NCBI RefSeq assembly: GCF_963506605.1 | Contig: NC_083278.1 | Span: 73,842,001 to 73,906,000 of the forward strand | Direction of reading: 5' to 3' | Source: Zootoca vivipara | Taxonomy: Eukaryota | Length of the DNA: 64,000 nt | Shown: piece after piece, positions 40,201 through 46,200 of the stretch | How positions within the stretch are numbered: the stretch's first letter is position 1 | How the letters are laid out: every line of letters starts with the position of its first letter | The notes under the pieces: generated by a model | What the model was told of the DNA's origin: nothing | The model's input: the letters and a program-made list of their open reading frames with translations, nothing else | The model's database searches: none | Program-made: the position numbers and the translations under genes

Positions 40201-43200
40201 CACAAAGGCATGTGTCACAGACTAGTGAGCATGAGGAGAAGAGGGGAGGGGAGATCAATTTGTCTGACAAGCTGAAATTCCTGGCCTGATGGAACGATCA
40301 TTATAGAGGGACATTGAGCTCCTCCCACAGAGGCTTGCGTTGCATCAACATACTTTGGGGAAAAAAAACATGAAACAGGCATTTCAACACAAATTAAGAC
40401 ATAGATCAAGTAGCATGTTCCCCTCAAGTGTGTGCAACAAAATTCTGAAGCTGTTTTTCTTATCAAAAAAGAAAAACTACTCTCTTGGTCCCCCCAAAAA
40501 AAATTAAAGGGAAAAACCCACTGGATGTACATTTCCAAAATACTGTATAAGATAAAAAAACAAATAAAATAAAACCTACATACAGCAACAGTGTTTTGTG
40601 TTGTGTAGGCTCTTTTGATGTATGTAATAGACCCTGCCTGCTAGCCTGCTCCCTAAAATATCACTGGTTTGCTCATTTCTATATATACCGTGTTTCTCCT
40701 AAAATAAGACGTGCCTCTAAAATAAGCCATGGCACGATCTTTTGAAGGCCAAAAAAGTAAGACATCCCCCCCAAATAAGACGTGTTGGGGGAGCCAGCGG
40801 GACAACCCAGAGCGAGCCGGCAAACGCAGCAGCGCGCGCTGCGCCGAGCCCCAGCACAGCGGGAGCCCCAGCACAGCGACGCGCGGAGCTCCGGCTGAAC
40901 GGGCCCTAGGACCCGGCAGCGGGTGGCGCGTGAAGCCGCAGGACCCGGCAGCAGCCCCAGCCGCGCCGCGCTGCACTGCGTGAAGCCCAGGGACCCAGCA
41001 GCGGGTCCTGGGGCTTCGCGCGGGAGGCTGCTGGCTCCTGCCGGGTCCTGCGGCTTCGCGCGCCGCCCGCTGCCGGGTCCCTGGGCTTCACGCGGTGCGG
41101 CGCGGCGCGGCTGGGGCTGCTGCCGGGTCCTGCTGGGTCCTGCGGCTTCGCGCGCCGCCCGCTGCCAGGTCCCCGGGCTTTATGCGGCGCGGTGCGGCAC
41201 GTGAAGCCGCAGGACTCGGCAGGAGCTGGCAGCAGTCCCAGCCGCGCCGCGTGAAGCCCAGGGACCCGGCAGCGGGCTCAGCGGGCGGCGCATGAAGCCG
41301 CAGCACCCGGCAGGAGCCGGCAGCAGTCCCAGCCGTGCCGCGTGAAGCCCAGGGACCCGGCAGCGGGCGGCGCGCGAAGCCGCAGGAGCCAGCAGCAGCC
41401 TCAGCCGCGCCGCACGAAGCCCCAGGACCAGGCAGCGGGCTCAACGGGCGGCGCGCGAAGCCACAGGAGCCGGCAGGAGCCGGCAGGAGCCGGCAGCAGC
41501 CTCAGCCGCGCCGCGCTGCGTGAAGCCCCAGGACCCAGCAGCGGGCGGCGCGCGATGCTGCAGGAGCCGGCAGGAGCCGGCAGCAGCCACAGCCGTGCCG
41601 CATGAAGCCCTGGGACCCAGCAGCAGGCTCAGCGGGCGGTGCAAGAAAGCCCTGTACCATACGTAACAATAAGACATCCCCCGAAAATAAGCCGTGATGT
41701 ATTTTTTTAAAAGAAAAATAAATATAAGACGTGTCTTATTTTAGGAGAAACATGGTAGGGTGCCTACATTTTGCATGGACTTTACATTCTGCATGGACTT
41801 TTCAACAATTACTCTGATAAAATACATATTTTGTTATGTGCAAATGGCTTTAGATGCCTATTAGATCCATAAATTACCATATAGCATATATTCAACACAA
41901 AAAACAGCGACAATTTGTTGTTGACAAAGGACAGCTGGACATATAAAGGGCCCCATTAGGGCCTCATCAAACCTAAATCCGGTCCTTGCTGCTTAATAAT
42001 AATAATAATAATAATAATAATTGTACCCTGCCTATCTGACTTCAGTTCTGTGACTCCCTACCACCCTGGATGGGCTTCAGAAGGGTGTTGCAAATATGTA
42101 CTTGGAACCCTGGGGCTGGGGAGAATAGCAGTGGGGAGGAGGAAAGCTGTTGCAACCTGCTCCCCCTACCGCCCCCGACCCCCAAACGAGAAAATTATTG
42201 GAAAATCACCCCCCACCCTACCCCCCCAATGCTGACATTGCTTTTCAGCAAAGAAGTAAACTGTCAGGGTTTCCTTACACATGACTGCATGTAATGTGTA
42301 GTTTGGCTCTAACAGATTCAGCCTTAGCAAGGTGAGAGCTTTGCTGCCCACCCAGCACCACTTATCTGACAGAACATTAACTGGCTAACATAAATTGTAT
42401 TAATCTGTTTTGACTTCTGCTGCCCAAAGGCCGAAATGATTTAGTTTTTAACTGTAGCTGCTGAATCAATAGCTGTTGACATTTGAGGCAGTTATGATTT
42501 ACTCCCGTAGTTTTTTGGTTTTTTTTGTTGCCCTCTATGCCCAGTAAATGGGATGTGACAACTCCACTCTGATGATTGTTTAAATACATTTGTTATCCAA
42601 AATGACTAACATTCTACCAAACAGCCACTGGTGCAACATACCCGGGAACAGTAGCAAAATAAGCAGAGCAATCTTCAAGGTCCACAGAAAAGCTCTGGGA
42701 ACTGTTAAGCATAGAAGGAAAGCTTTTGAAAGCTCCGAAAACATTTAACAATAAAGTAAACAGATGTATAACACTTTGCCTTACTTGTAATTCCTTTCCC
42801 AGAACTTGACTGGTCTGGCGTAGGATGTGAGAAAAATGACACTCCCGAGAAATGGACTCAGTGGAGTAGAAAAGATTGCAGTGGCCAGAGTCTGAAAGAA
42901 GAGCATTGCCGAATCTGAAAATTTCAAGTTAAGGTAACACAGATGAAGTCGCTGCCTTTTATGCTGTCCTTCGGGCACTTTCTGACCTATTTATCTTACT
43001 CACTTTCTCCACAAAGAGGCAGAAGCAAGGAAATGACAGGCAAAAGATGAGAGCCACCATCGTTCAAACTTACCTGACTTAGTTGTGTGTCTATCATTTG
43101 TCCCCAGTGAATGTTATACATTTATCCAAACTTTCAGTGTCCCTGGGCTTCAAATGCCAATCGAAAGTACGATTTAGCCAAAGCTAAGCGGGTGACGCTG

Positions 43201-46200
43201 TGGTCTAAACCACTGAGCCTAGAGTTTGCCGATCAGAAGGTCAGCGGTTCGAATCCCCATGACGGGATGAGCTCCTGTTGTTCTGTCCCAGCTCCTGCCC
43301 ACCTAGCAATTCGAAAGCACGTCTGGCGGGAAGGTAAACGTGCACTGCTCTGGTTCGCCAGAAGCGGCTTAGTCATGCTGGCCACATGACCCAGAAGCTG
43401 TCTGCGGACAAACGCCAGCTCCCCCGGCCTATAGAGTGAGATGAGCACCACAACCCTAGACTCATCCACGACTGGACCTAATGGTCAGGGGTACCTTTAC
43501 TTTTAAGCCCCTTTATGTCTGACTGAGTTCAATGATAGAGCTCTAAATATATGCATAACTGCCTCATTGAAATCAACAGTACTTTGAAGTGTTTGACTTT
43601 GGCTTACAGAGTCAGTGTGGTGCTGTGTTGGCGAGGTCCTGAGTGACCCGGGTTCAAATACTCACTTGGCCATGAAGCTCCCTTGTGCCTTGGTCCAATT
43701 GCTGACTCTCAGCCTAACCTACCTCAAAGTTGTGGGAATTAAATGAGGAGAGGAAGAACCTTGAACTCTTTGGATTAAAAGATGGAATTATAAATGCAGT
43801 AAATAATAAATAGACTGGGCTATTTGTCACTTGAATTAATTCAGGGTCCTGTATTGAAATGTGTCTAACATTTCTTCTTAATCTGTCATATATGAGCAAC
43901 TGTCATAAATAACTAATATGCTAATGATTTTTTTTCCATCCGTCTGTCTCAGGAGACAATGGAGGAGTGTGCCTTTGGGGGTGAAGCCAAACTGTTGGAA
44001 GGTTACATACAGTGCCTGCAGAGACTGATATGGGAGAGACATGCTTTGTTGGTAATTGAAGTAATAATCAAATTTCAGCTTTTCTCCTAAGGCCTAATTA
44101 ATCAAATGTTTGATGTTATCTGCCGTTTTAGAAAATACTTATCAAGCATATACTGTATCTGCAACTCCTTAAATTTATTGAGAGGATGTTATAGAATGAT
44201 GTCTGTGCCTATTAGTGATTATGTGAGATGAGTTGCCCTCAGAGCCTCTCAAACCTTCATAGGGATGAAGGAAGTGTCAACAAAGTTCAATTGGCATAAT
44301 ATTGTGGACTCGTGATTCATACTGGCTTGGAAGGACAGAAAGTCACCACTGTGGGGTACGTGCAAGGAGCAAGAAAGGTAGAGAAACCAAAGAAGGGGGG
44401 TGGAGGAAGCCTCCTAAATACTATTTCAAATTCAGAAGCATTACAAAAATATCTATGCATATATTCCTCTATAATAAACAGGGAGGAAAAACATAAGAGC
44501 TCTCATGCCAATAAGCAAATGGAGGACCTTGGGCAAAAGAAGGCCTACACCAGGCAAAGGCAAACTCGGCCCTCCAGATGTTTTGAGACTACAATTCCCA
44601 TCATCCCTCACCACTGGTCTTGTTAGCTGGGGATGATGGCAGTTGTAGTCCCAAAACATCTGGAGGGCCGAGTTTGCCTATGCCATCTTTAAGACCAGCA
44701 GGATCCCAGCAATAATCCAGCGAACAGACTTTCACGACTTCACTATAAAAATGTAACATTCATAATAATAATAACAACAATAATTATTGCTAATCTGATC
44801 TCTGTAGTTCAGTCACTTTCTCTGTTCCCAATTAATGACATAGAGGCAGCCCCACCAGTAGCTTCCATTTCTGAAAATGTTGCATCAGAGTGATCAGATT
44901 AGCAGAGATTCCCAGAAAGTCTGGGAAAGGCGAAGAGTCACTGTCCAATTTCCTTATCTGTCCGAGAGCCAACAAAACATTTTAGCCATTCTTACCTACA
45001 TACTAGAGTGGCTTCTGAAGCAAAGCAGACTTTTAGGTTACACACCCCACCGAAGAAGTAATAATGTCACAAGCAATAATGAAATACATTTCTCAGCTCA
45101 TTGCTTTTTCTTATTTTTATCTGTTTAATAATTTATATCCCACTTTTCAAAGTATTGTTCAAAGGATCTTTTTTAATATTGCATTTTCTCCCTCTGGGAA
45201 TATCCATACTTTGTTTCAAAACTTTAACATTAAGAAAAAAATACTTTTCTTAATCTAAATTGCCCAAGAACATCCTGCTTCCCTTAACCCTCTGAATGCA
45301 GAACAAAATAGCAGGTAGACTGAAAAGGATATGAGGTATTGCAAAGAGCTGAGCAAATACATGGAACGAAGAGCCCCAGGCAATCTGCCAAGGAGCAATA
45401 TAGGTCAGAATGAACTGCAACTTTTGCAGGAGGTCCCACAGCTGAAAGCAAAAGAGACAGAAAAGTTATGACAGCATATGTGAAAAGCATTTTTTAAGAA
45501 AGAAAGAAAGAAAGAAAGAAAGAGCATTTTACCGTATGTATCCTATACAACACGCAATGTCCATGTACCTATATTGCAATTATACTACCTCTTGGATTGT
45601 AGGTATTCAGTTAATATAGAAAGTGAAGTGGAATTTTTATTTTAACACACTATTTATTTAATTACTCAATCAATCAATCAATATTATTCTTAATTACTTG
45701 CCCTTCACCCCAAGGTCTGACAGCAGGTTACAGCATTAAACACAATATTAAAAACAATTAAAAACAACTTGCAATCATAAAAAGTTGGGTCCTGAAAACA
45801 TACAGCCCTGGTGTCAAAAGCCAACGTGAAGTGGAACATCTTCAGCATTATCCATAAGCTATACAGTGGTACCTCGGTTTATGAACACAATTTGTTCCGG
45901 AAGTCTGTTCATAAACTGAAGCGTTCATAAACTGCAGCGAACTTTCCCACTGAAAGTAATGGAAAGTGGATTAATCCATTCCAGACGGGTCCACGGAGTA
46001 CTCAACCTGAAGCGCACTTAACCCGAAGCATGGGTGTAATTGGTTCCGGAAGTCTGTTCATAAACTGCAGCGTTCATAAACTCAAGCGAACTTTCCCATT
46101 GAAAGTAATGGAAAGTGAATTAATCCGTTCCAGATGGGCCCGCGGCGTTCGTAAACCGAAAATTCCTAAACCGAGGTGTTCATAAACCGAGGTTTGAGTG

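Follow-up and report, generated by a model that had tools for sequence, protein, structure and literature searches.

The window analysed here is a stretch of 64,000 nucleotides from the lizard Zootoca vivipara (contig NC_083278.1, positions 73,842,001 to 73,906,000), and it carries on its minus strand exons of a pecanex gene, indicated to be PCNX2, one intron of which combines the signals of the minor (U12-type) spliceosome with the hybrid termini AT and AG. The best explanation, to which we assign a probability of about 0.85, is that this intron is the lizard orthologue of the known PCNX2 U12-type intron, now AT-AG through a G-to-A change at its first position (+1), and that this state is old and tolerated. 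The intron is real; its class, the dependence of such introns on CENATAC and subtype switching have already been published, and no new mechanism is involved. The elements of the intron and of the two exons that it separates, here called e and f, are the following (a slash marks a splice border throughout):

45333 to 45441, minus strand: exon e, starting in phase 0, its last base C being the first of a His codon; 35/36 residues are identical to a Mimus melanotis protein (P0002), a bird-like fragment (P0001) and a metagenome contig (L001)
45324 to 45332, minus strand: U12-type 5′ splice site ATATCCTTT, with A at +1 (45332) and a 9/9 match to RTATCCTT(T)
42915 to 45332, minus strand: intron of 2418 nucleotides, phase 1, with AT...AG termini
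42928 to 42936, minus strand: U12 branch-site motif TACCTTAAC, matching TTCCTTAAC at 8/9 positions (tested as TTCCTTRAY)
42915 to 42917, minus strand: 3′ splice site CAG, where the read-through open reading frame (ORF) of every relative has Asp (G/AT or G/AC)
42784 to 42914, minus strand: exon f, AT plus 43 residues (SAML...ERNYK), followed by the ordinary U2 donor AAG/GTAAGG

Exon e, which encodes 36 residues plus the C, is directly preceded by an ordinary U2 acceptor, ttttgctttcag. From 45332 downwards the intron opens with ATATCCTTTT. The presumed branch A, at 42929, is located 14 nucleotides ahead of the last intron base, and the 13 nucleotides that separate TACCTTAAC from exon f read TTGAAATTTTCAG, with the intron end TTTTCAG at 42915 and no long polypyrimidine tract between the motif and the 3′ splice site. 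Exon f opens AT TCG GCA ATG, and C/AT, once joined, gives His and the protein AIPH/SAML. The donor match, the branch motif at its spacing and the positional orthology to human U12 introns place the intron in the U12 class, while the termini AT and AG, at borders that restore the conserved frame, place it in the AT-AG subclass. The initial annotation, made from the sequence of the window, had proposed that a PCNX2-like gene holds a U12-type intron bounded by AT and AG, and this is borne out by the donor, branch site and termini read directly and by the human U12 orthology.

Candidate donor and acceptor pairs were joined by a local script, for the reading-frame test alone, and the database searches used single exons, one at a time. 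The local enumeration yielded other in-frame donor/acceptor pairs, every one of which adds or deletes conserved residues; AT...AG is the only pair giving the conserved AIPH/SAML, as had been proposed from the outset. The sole GT in frame with the acceptor at 42915 is a weak TCA/GTCTAC at 45320. Reading of the minus strand of the window found no AC from the branch site to exon f, again in agreement with the initial annotation, and both the next AC (42891-42890) and the next AG (42893-42892) would shift the frame. The use of AT-AC ends was rejected, given that the window has no AC at a usable distance and that in L001 the AC right behind the AG would shift the frame. In that contig the AC abuts the acceptor (CAG/AC, L001:8133-8137), a frame-breaking competitor 2 nucleotides from the real acceptor, and AT-AC splicing there would remove two more bases and then run into a stop.

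RTATCCTT occurs in 3 copies in the window against about 4 expected, and the octamer alone is thus within chance; its occurrence precisely at an exon border, combined with a branch match of 8/9 at the proper spacing, is far beyond chance (about 3e-8 from simple counting). Two further occurrences of ATATCCTT, both on the minus strand, were discarded as chance matches: the one at 52339 is part of a CR1-like reverse-transcriptase ORF (LFNILIND), and the one at 15446 falls in non-coding DNA.

The gene is a pecanex, as established by a Pecanex_C match in a downstream minus-strand exon:

7851 to 7979, minus strand: downstream exon piece, Pfam Pecanex_C (PF05041), E 4e-17, 62.9 bits (cut-off 27)

A Pfam search with exons e and f alone gave no match, and a search of the protein Atlas with P0002 gave no usable match. 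The exon edge in the window reads A-I-P, like human PCNX2, and that of PCNX1 and PCNX3 reads A-V-P; orthology to PCNX2 in particular is indicated by this sequence likeness. Human PCNX1, PCNX2 and PCNX3 all carry a U12 GT-AG intron, listed with RNA sequencing read counts in Dataset EV1 of de Wolf et al. 2021 (PMC8280824), and these three introns sit at the same codon as the lizard intron. In the human PCNX2 row of that dataset the exon ends ..ATTCCTC, the donor is GTATCCTTT, the branch site TGCCTTAAC and the acceptor ..CAG/ATTC. The human PCNX2 and lizard introns share the AIP-His/Ser codon, phase 1, an exon ending ..CCTC followed by the donor core TATCCTTT, a branch site of the form xxCCTTAAC, the 14-nucleotide spacing and the end CAG/AT. 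They differ in the branch motif, which is TACCTTAAC in the lizard and TGCCTTAAC in human PCNX2, and in the first intron base, which is A in the lizard and G in human PCNX1, PCNX2 and PCNX3. Since codon, phase and signals are the same in human, the lizard intron corresponds to the minor intron already known from PCNX2, its G at +1 replaced by A. For the human PCNX2 minor intron a high control retention (PSI 0.39) was reported in HeLa cells, from few reads (23 spanning and 217 intronic; PMC8280824).

A scan of Joint Genome Institute metagenome contigs with a DNA pattern specific for A at +1, which cannot match G-allele donors, gave a sole match, L001 (Ga0065711_1051578). Its exons lie at 3551-3659 and 8136-8266, and the 4476-nucleotide intron between them opens with ATATCCTTTA and ends with TGTGTTACCTTAACTTGCAATTTTCAG, the branch A being again 14 nucleotides from the end. 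Between the window and L001 the exons have a synonymous divergence (dS) of 0.82 and a non-synonymous divergence (dN) of 0.028, that is, dN/dS 0.034. Within the intron the first 9 nucleotides are identical at 9/9 positions (ATATCCTTT) and the following 50 at about 35%; the last 30 are identical at 28/30, with TACCTTAAC unchanged, and the remainder at about 35%, the random level. Both predicted minor-spliceosome signals, in their AT-AG form, are constant across this deep divergence. The L001 exons are identical at 78/79 residues to P0002, an NCBI protein from the mockingbird Mimus melanotis, and the contig has a CR1-like ORF; because of these two features L001 was taken, without proof, as coming from a bird or another archosaur.

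Further relatives were obtained by three word searches as gene calls on short public contigs that run from exon e into the intron. In these fragments the codon after AIP reveals the first intron base, His (C/AT) standing for A and Arg (C/GT) for G:

P0001, P0004 and P0005: bird-like PCNX2, AIP-H-ILY, first intron base A
P0041: mammal-like PCNX2, AIP-H-ILS, first intron base A
P0003, P0042 and P0044: mammal-like PCNX2, AIP-R-ILS, first intron base G
P0019, P0023, P0028, P0030 and P0033: PCNX1/3-like and invertebrate-like, the whole short intron read through, R...D, first intron base G (GT...AG)

All the fragments that read into exon f (14/14) have Asp before SAM, SAL or SAV, which means that the last intron base is G in every one; no relative ending in C, and no AT-AC form, was found among these 14 readable 3′ ends. 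As P0041 reads AIP-H-ILS, some mammal would have A at +1, unlike the other mammal-like fragments. P0041 is a Logan fragment of 128 amino acids, and the translation of its upstream intron sequence can be aligned to P0003 and P0042. P0003, and perhaps P0042, may be human or primate, the donor reading like that of the human PCNX2 row.

The alternative that survives best holds that the U12 donor has lost strength, or all activity, through A at +1 and that a cryptic U2 donor or exon skipping is used instead, for example by joining GT(45320) to AG(42915), which would give AIPHILFNSAML. This in-frame pair is present, impaired minor splicing often activates cryptic sites at human A-type introns (PMC8280824), and the zero depth on the exons in two RNA runs, X21 and X22, is compatible with such splicing. 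However, TCA/GTCTAC makes a very poor U2 donor that L001 does not conserve, the 9-nucleotide U12 donor and the branch site have been kept across a dS of 0.82, unlike a dead site, and the conserved protein P0002 has no insertion. We regard the loss of the U12 donor as unlikely.

Whether the A at +1 is genuine could be judged from public runs deposited under the same species label, many of DNA and three of RNA, from which the DNA run X5 and the RNA runs X21 and X22 were used; a relative, X11 ('organism B'), was also compared. X5 is an independent DNA run from another study, and its contig covering 44656-45487 has 12 differences from the window in 830 nucleotides, none of them within 45324-45332. 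Exon e contains one of these, a synonymous ATA>ATT; X5 matches the window exactly at the branch site and CAG. With its 12 differences, X5 represents a different haplotype carrying the same ATATCCTTT. The two intron ends given in the initial annotation, 45332 and 42915, hence stood up to the raw reads, with A at +1 and an identical CAG. Misassembly does not account for the A at +1, which is fixed in this lizard species. The contrary proposal, that 45332 was misassembled or shows a rare allele, perhaps a harmful one, and that the true state is an ordinary GT-AG U12 intron, draws on the dependence of the class on one base and on the G of the human orthologue; it is largely refuted by the same A in the independent, different haplotype of X5, as well as in L001 and in three other bird-like fragments, and its chances are very slight.

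Equally slight are the chances that the major (U2) spliceosome removes the intron as a non-canonical AT-AG intron: U2-type AT-AC introns do exist (PMC1557818), but the donor here matches the U12 consensus at 9/9 positions and has no G at +5, a U12-type branch site lies at U12 spacing with no polypyrimidine tract, and the human orthologous intron is classed as U12 and one data set shows more retention of it when ZRSR2 is mutated (PSI rising from 0.13 to 0.33; p 0.002 raw and 0.10 adjusted; PMC8280824). Finally, a decaying pseudogene, in which an odd splice site would be without consequence, would fit the lack of expression in the two RNA runs, yet it is hardly credible given the dN/dS of 0.034 over both exons against L001, the open frames, the intact flanking U2 sites and the presence of the Pecanex_C exon, while zero depth in a 6% sample of two runs of unknown tissue carries little weight.

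Four points weigh against an old and tolerated AT-AG intron in PCNX2. The contig of X11 spans the donor, though its +1 base was not readable, 5 of its 26 differences being shown. The RNA runs X21 and X22, of which about 6% of each was read, had zero depth on exons e and f, their reads falling on intronic repeats alone, and thus speak neither for nor against use of the junction. The apparent bird identity of L001 and P0001 rests on similarity to two passerine proteins and on a CR1-like ORF. Lastly, reviews rate AT-AG introns as 'disfavored' and inefficiently spliced.

Taking the intron as a functional AT-AG minor intron, the U11/U12 di-snRNP (small nuclear ribonucleoprotein) would recognise the donor ATATCCTTT and the branch site TACCTTAAC, the first AG at an optimal distance would be chosen, and the minor spliceosome would join C/AT, restoring the His of AIPH/SAML. 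The pair formed by A at +1 and G at the last position would be tolerated, just as XPO4, ACTR10 and INPP5B tolerate it in their human AT-AG introns. The last base would have stayed G while the first went from G to A, producing an 'A-type' AT-AG minor intron. By analogy with introns of that type, its removal is probably somewhat slow and CENATAC-dependent. The initial annotation had further suggested that it may be a rate-limiting step for PCNX2 expression.

GT-AG is the ancestral state predicted by parsimony over human PCNX1, PCNX2 and PCNX3 together with the PCNX1/3-like and invertebrate-like fragments. As human PCNX1, PCNX2 and PCNX3 are all GT-AG, the change would have run from GT-AG to AT-AG and then persisted, and as AT-AG is common to the lizard and to bird-like genomes, the state would be old and tolerated. 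The constancy of the signals suggests that the AT-AG state is under purifying selection as it stands. In sauropsids it looks old and stable, not transitional. [quoted passage not shown] Under that scenario AT-AG, derived from GT-AG, would be an end point that is stable and kept up by selection, and not a short-lived, poorly spliced step from AT-AC. Moreover, a +1 G-to-A change in a GT-AG U12 intron would be near neutral, which would bear on the reading of patient variants and on the scoring used by gene-loss pipelines.

AT-AG introns as such are not new. They are the commonest non-canonical U12 class, Sheth et al. 2006 (PMC1557818) counting 11 human and 8 mouse cases, and U12DB and the CENATAC paper (PMC8280824) place them among the AT-AN introns. 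Hence the rarity claimed by the initial annotation holds insofar as the class is rare, but it is a class already described and the most frequent of the non-canonical ones. Switches between GT-AG and AT-AG from human to mouse, conserved AT-AG introns and the idea of a 'viable intermediate' were all in the 2006 paper (PMC1557818). The introns of XPO4, ACTR10 and SCN10A are AT-AG in human and GT-AG in mouse, whereas those of NUP210, USP21, RAPGEFL1 and INPP5B are AT-AG in both (PMC1557818; PMC8280824). Splicing of AT-AG U12 introns is documented in human cells, for example in XPO4, ACTR10 and INPP5B, and animal AT-AG introns typically have a C ahead of the AG. The suggestion that the PCNX2 intron is an intermediate in subtype switching therefore cannot be kept as a new idea, having been published by Sheth et al. 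2006 (PMC1557818); for this intron it amounts to a formal description and is not supported, AT-AG recurring in the deeply diverged L001 (dS 0.82) and only GT-AG and AT-AG having been seen, with G at 14/14 3′ ends and GT-AG in human PCNX1, PCNX2 and PCNX3.

With the known AT-AG U12 introns the lizard intron shares the ATATCCTT donor, the U12 branch site, the CAG acceptor and a distance of one base from a GT-AG orthologue. It differs from them in that PCNX2 was not seen in the lists of such cases and in that the AT-AG form occurs in a lizard and in bird-like genomes, mammals having mostly GT-AG. With the canonical AT-AC U12 introns it has in common the A at +1 and the donor and branch consensus, and dependence on CENATAC would be expected by analogy; those introns end in C, whereas the lizard PCNX2 intron ends in G. 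PCNX2 with AT-AG ends was not found in the literature or in supplements (those of the intronIC/IAOD paper and of a pan-eukaryote survey do not name the gene), online intron databases being outside the search, and the text of no paper found pairs PCNX2 with minor introns, although the gene is named in the PMC8280824 dataset. PCNX2 adds a case, well supported, in which a minor intron went from GT-AG to AT-AG and has remained so in deeply diverged lineages. It indicates that the 'disfavoured' hybrid AT-AG state can be stable and that a U12 GT-AG intron need not be inactivated by G-to-A at +1.

The form of the intron has consequences for annotation. The initial annotation had anticipated that automated procedures would mis-model it, and one model does so: in P0047 (NCBI EK904_013739, Melospiza melodia maxima) a cryptic GT inside exon e, after ..IAWG, is spliced to the true acceptor. 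That GT corresponds to GG/GTCATC in L001, and exon f is read out of frame (LCYAFFSNSG...). The NCBI model of Mimus melanotis (P0002) has the correct junction. Gene predictors restricted to GT-AG introns break this gene. In the TOGA2 preprint GT and AG are the canonical U12 dinucleotides and everything else is counted as mutated, and a TOGA2-style projection from human would flag the lizard donor as mutated.

The intron also holds two very high-copy repeats resembling short interspersed elements:

43180 to 43560: SINE-like repeat in the intron, word depth in millions against about 53 beside it; no part of the splicing signals
44520 to 44715: second SINE-like repeat in the intron, word depth in millions against about 53 for unique sequence

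A further copy of the first repeat is found near 58234-58487. RNA run X22 has an approximately 11,000-fold, one-stranded pile on about 45 nucleotides at 43942-43987, and the flanks of the piled reads do not match the window, which points to an abundant RNA from elsewhere that shares a short piece of a repeat. The next intron downstream contains a GC-rich tandem array at 41027-41481 (periods 91-92, 72 and 40 nucleotides), with long spurious ORFs on both strands. Long reverse-transcriptase ORFs of long interspersed elements are present in PCNX2 introns at 13394-14827 (plus strand, 477 amino acids) and at 19587-20354 (minus strand, 255 amino acids).

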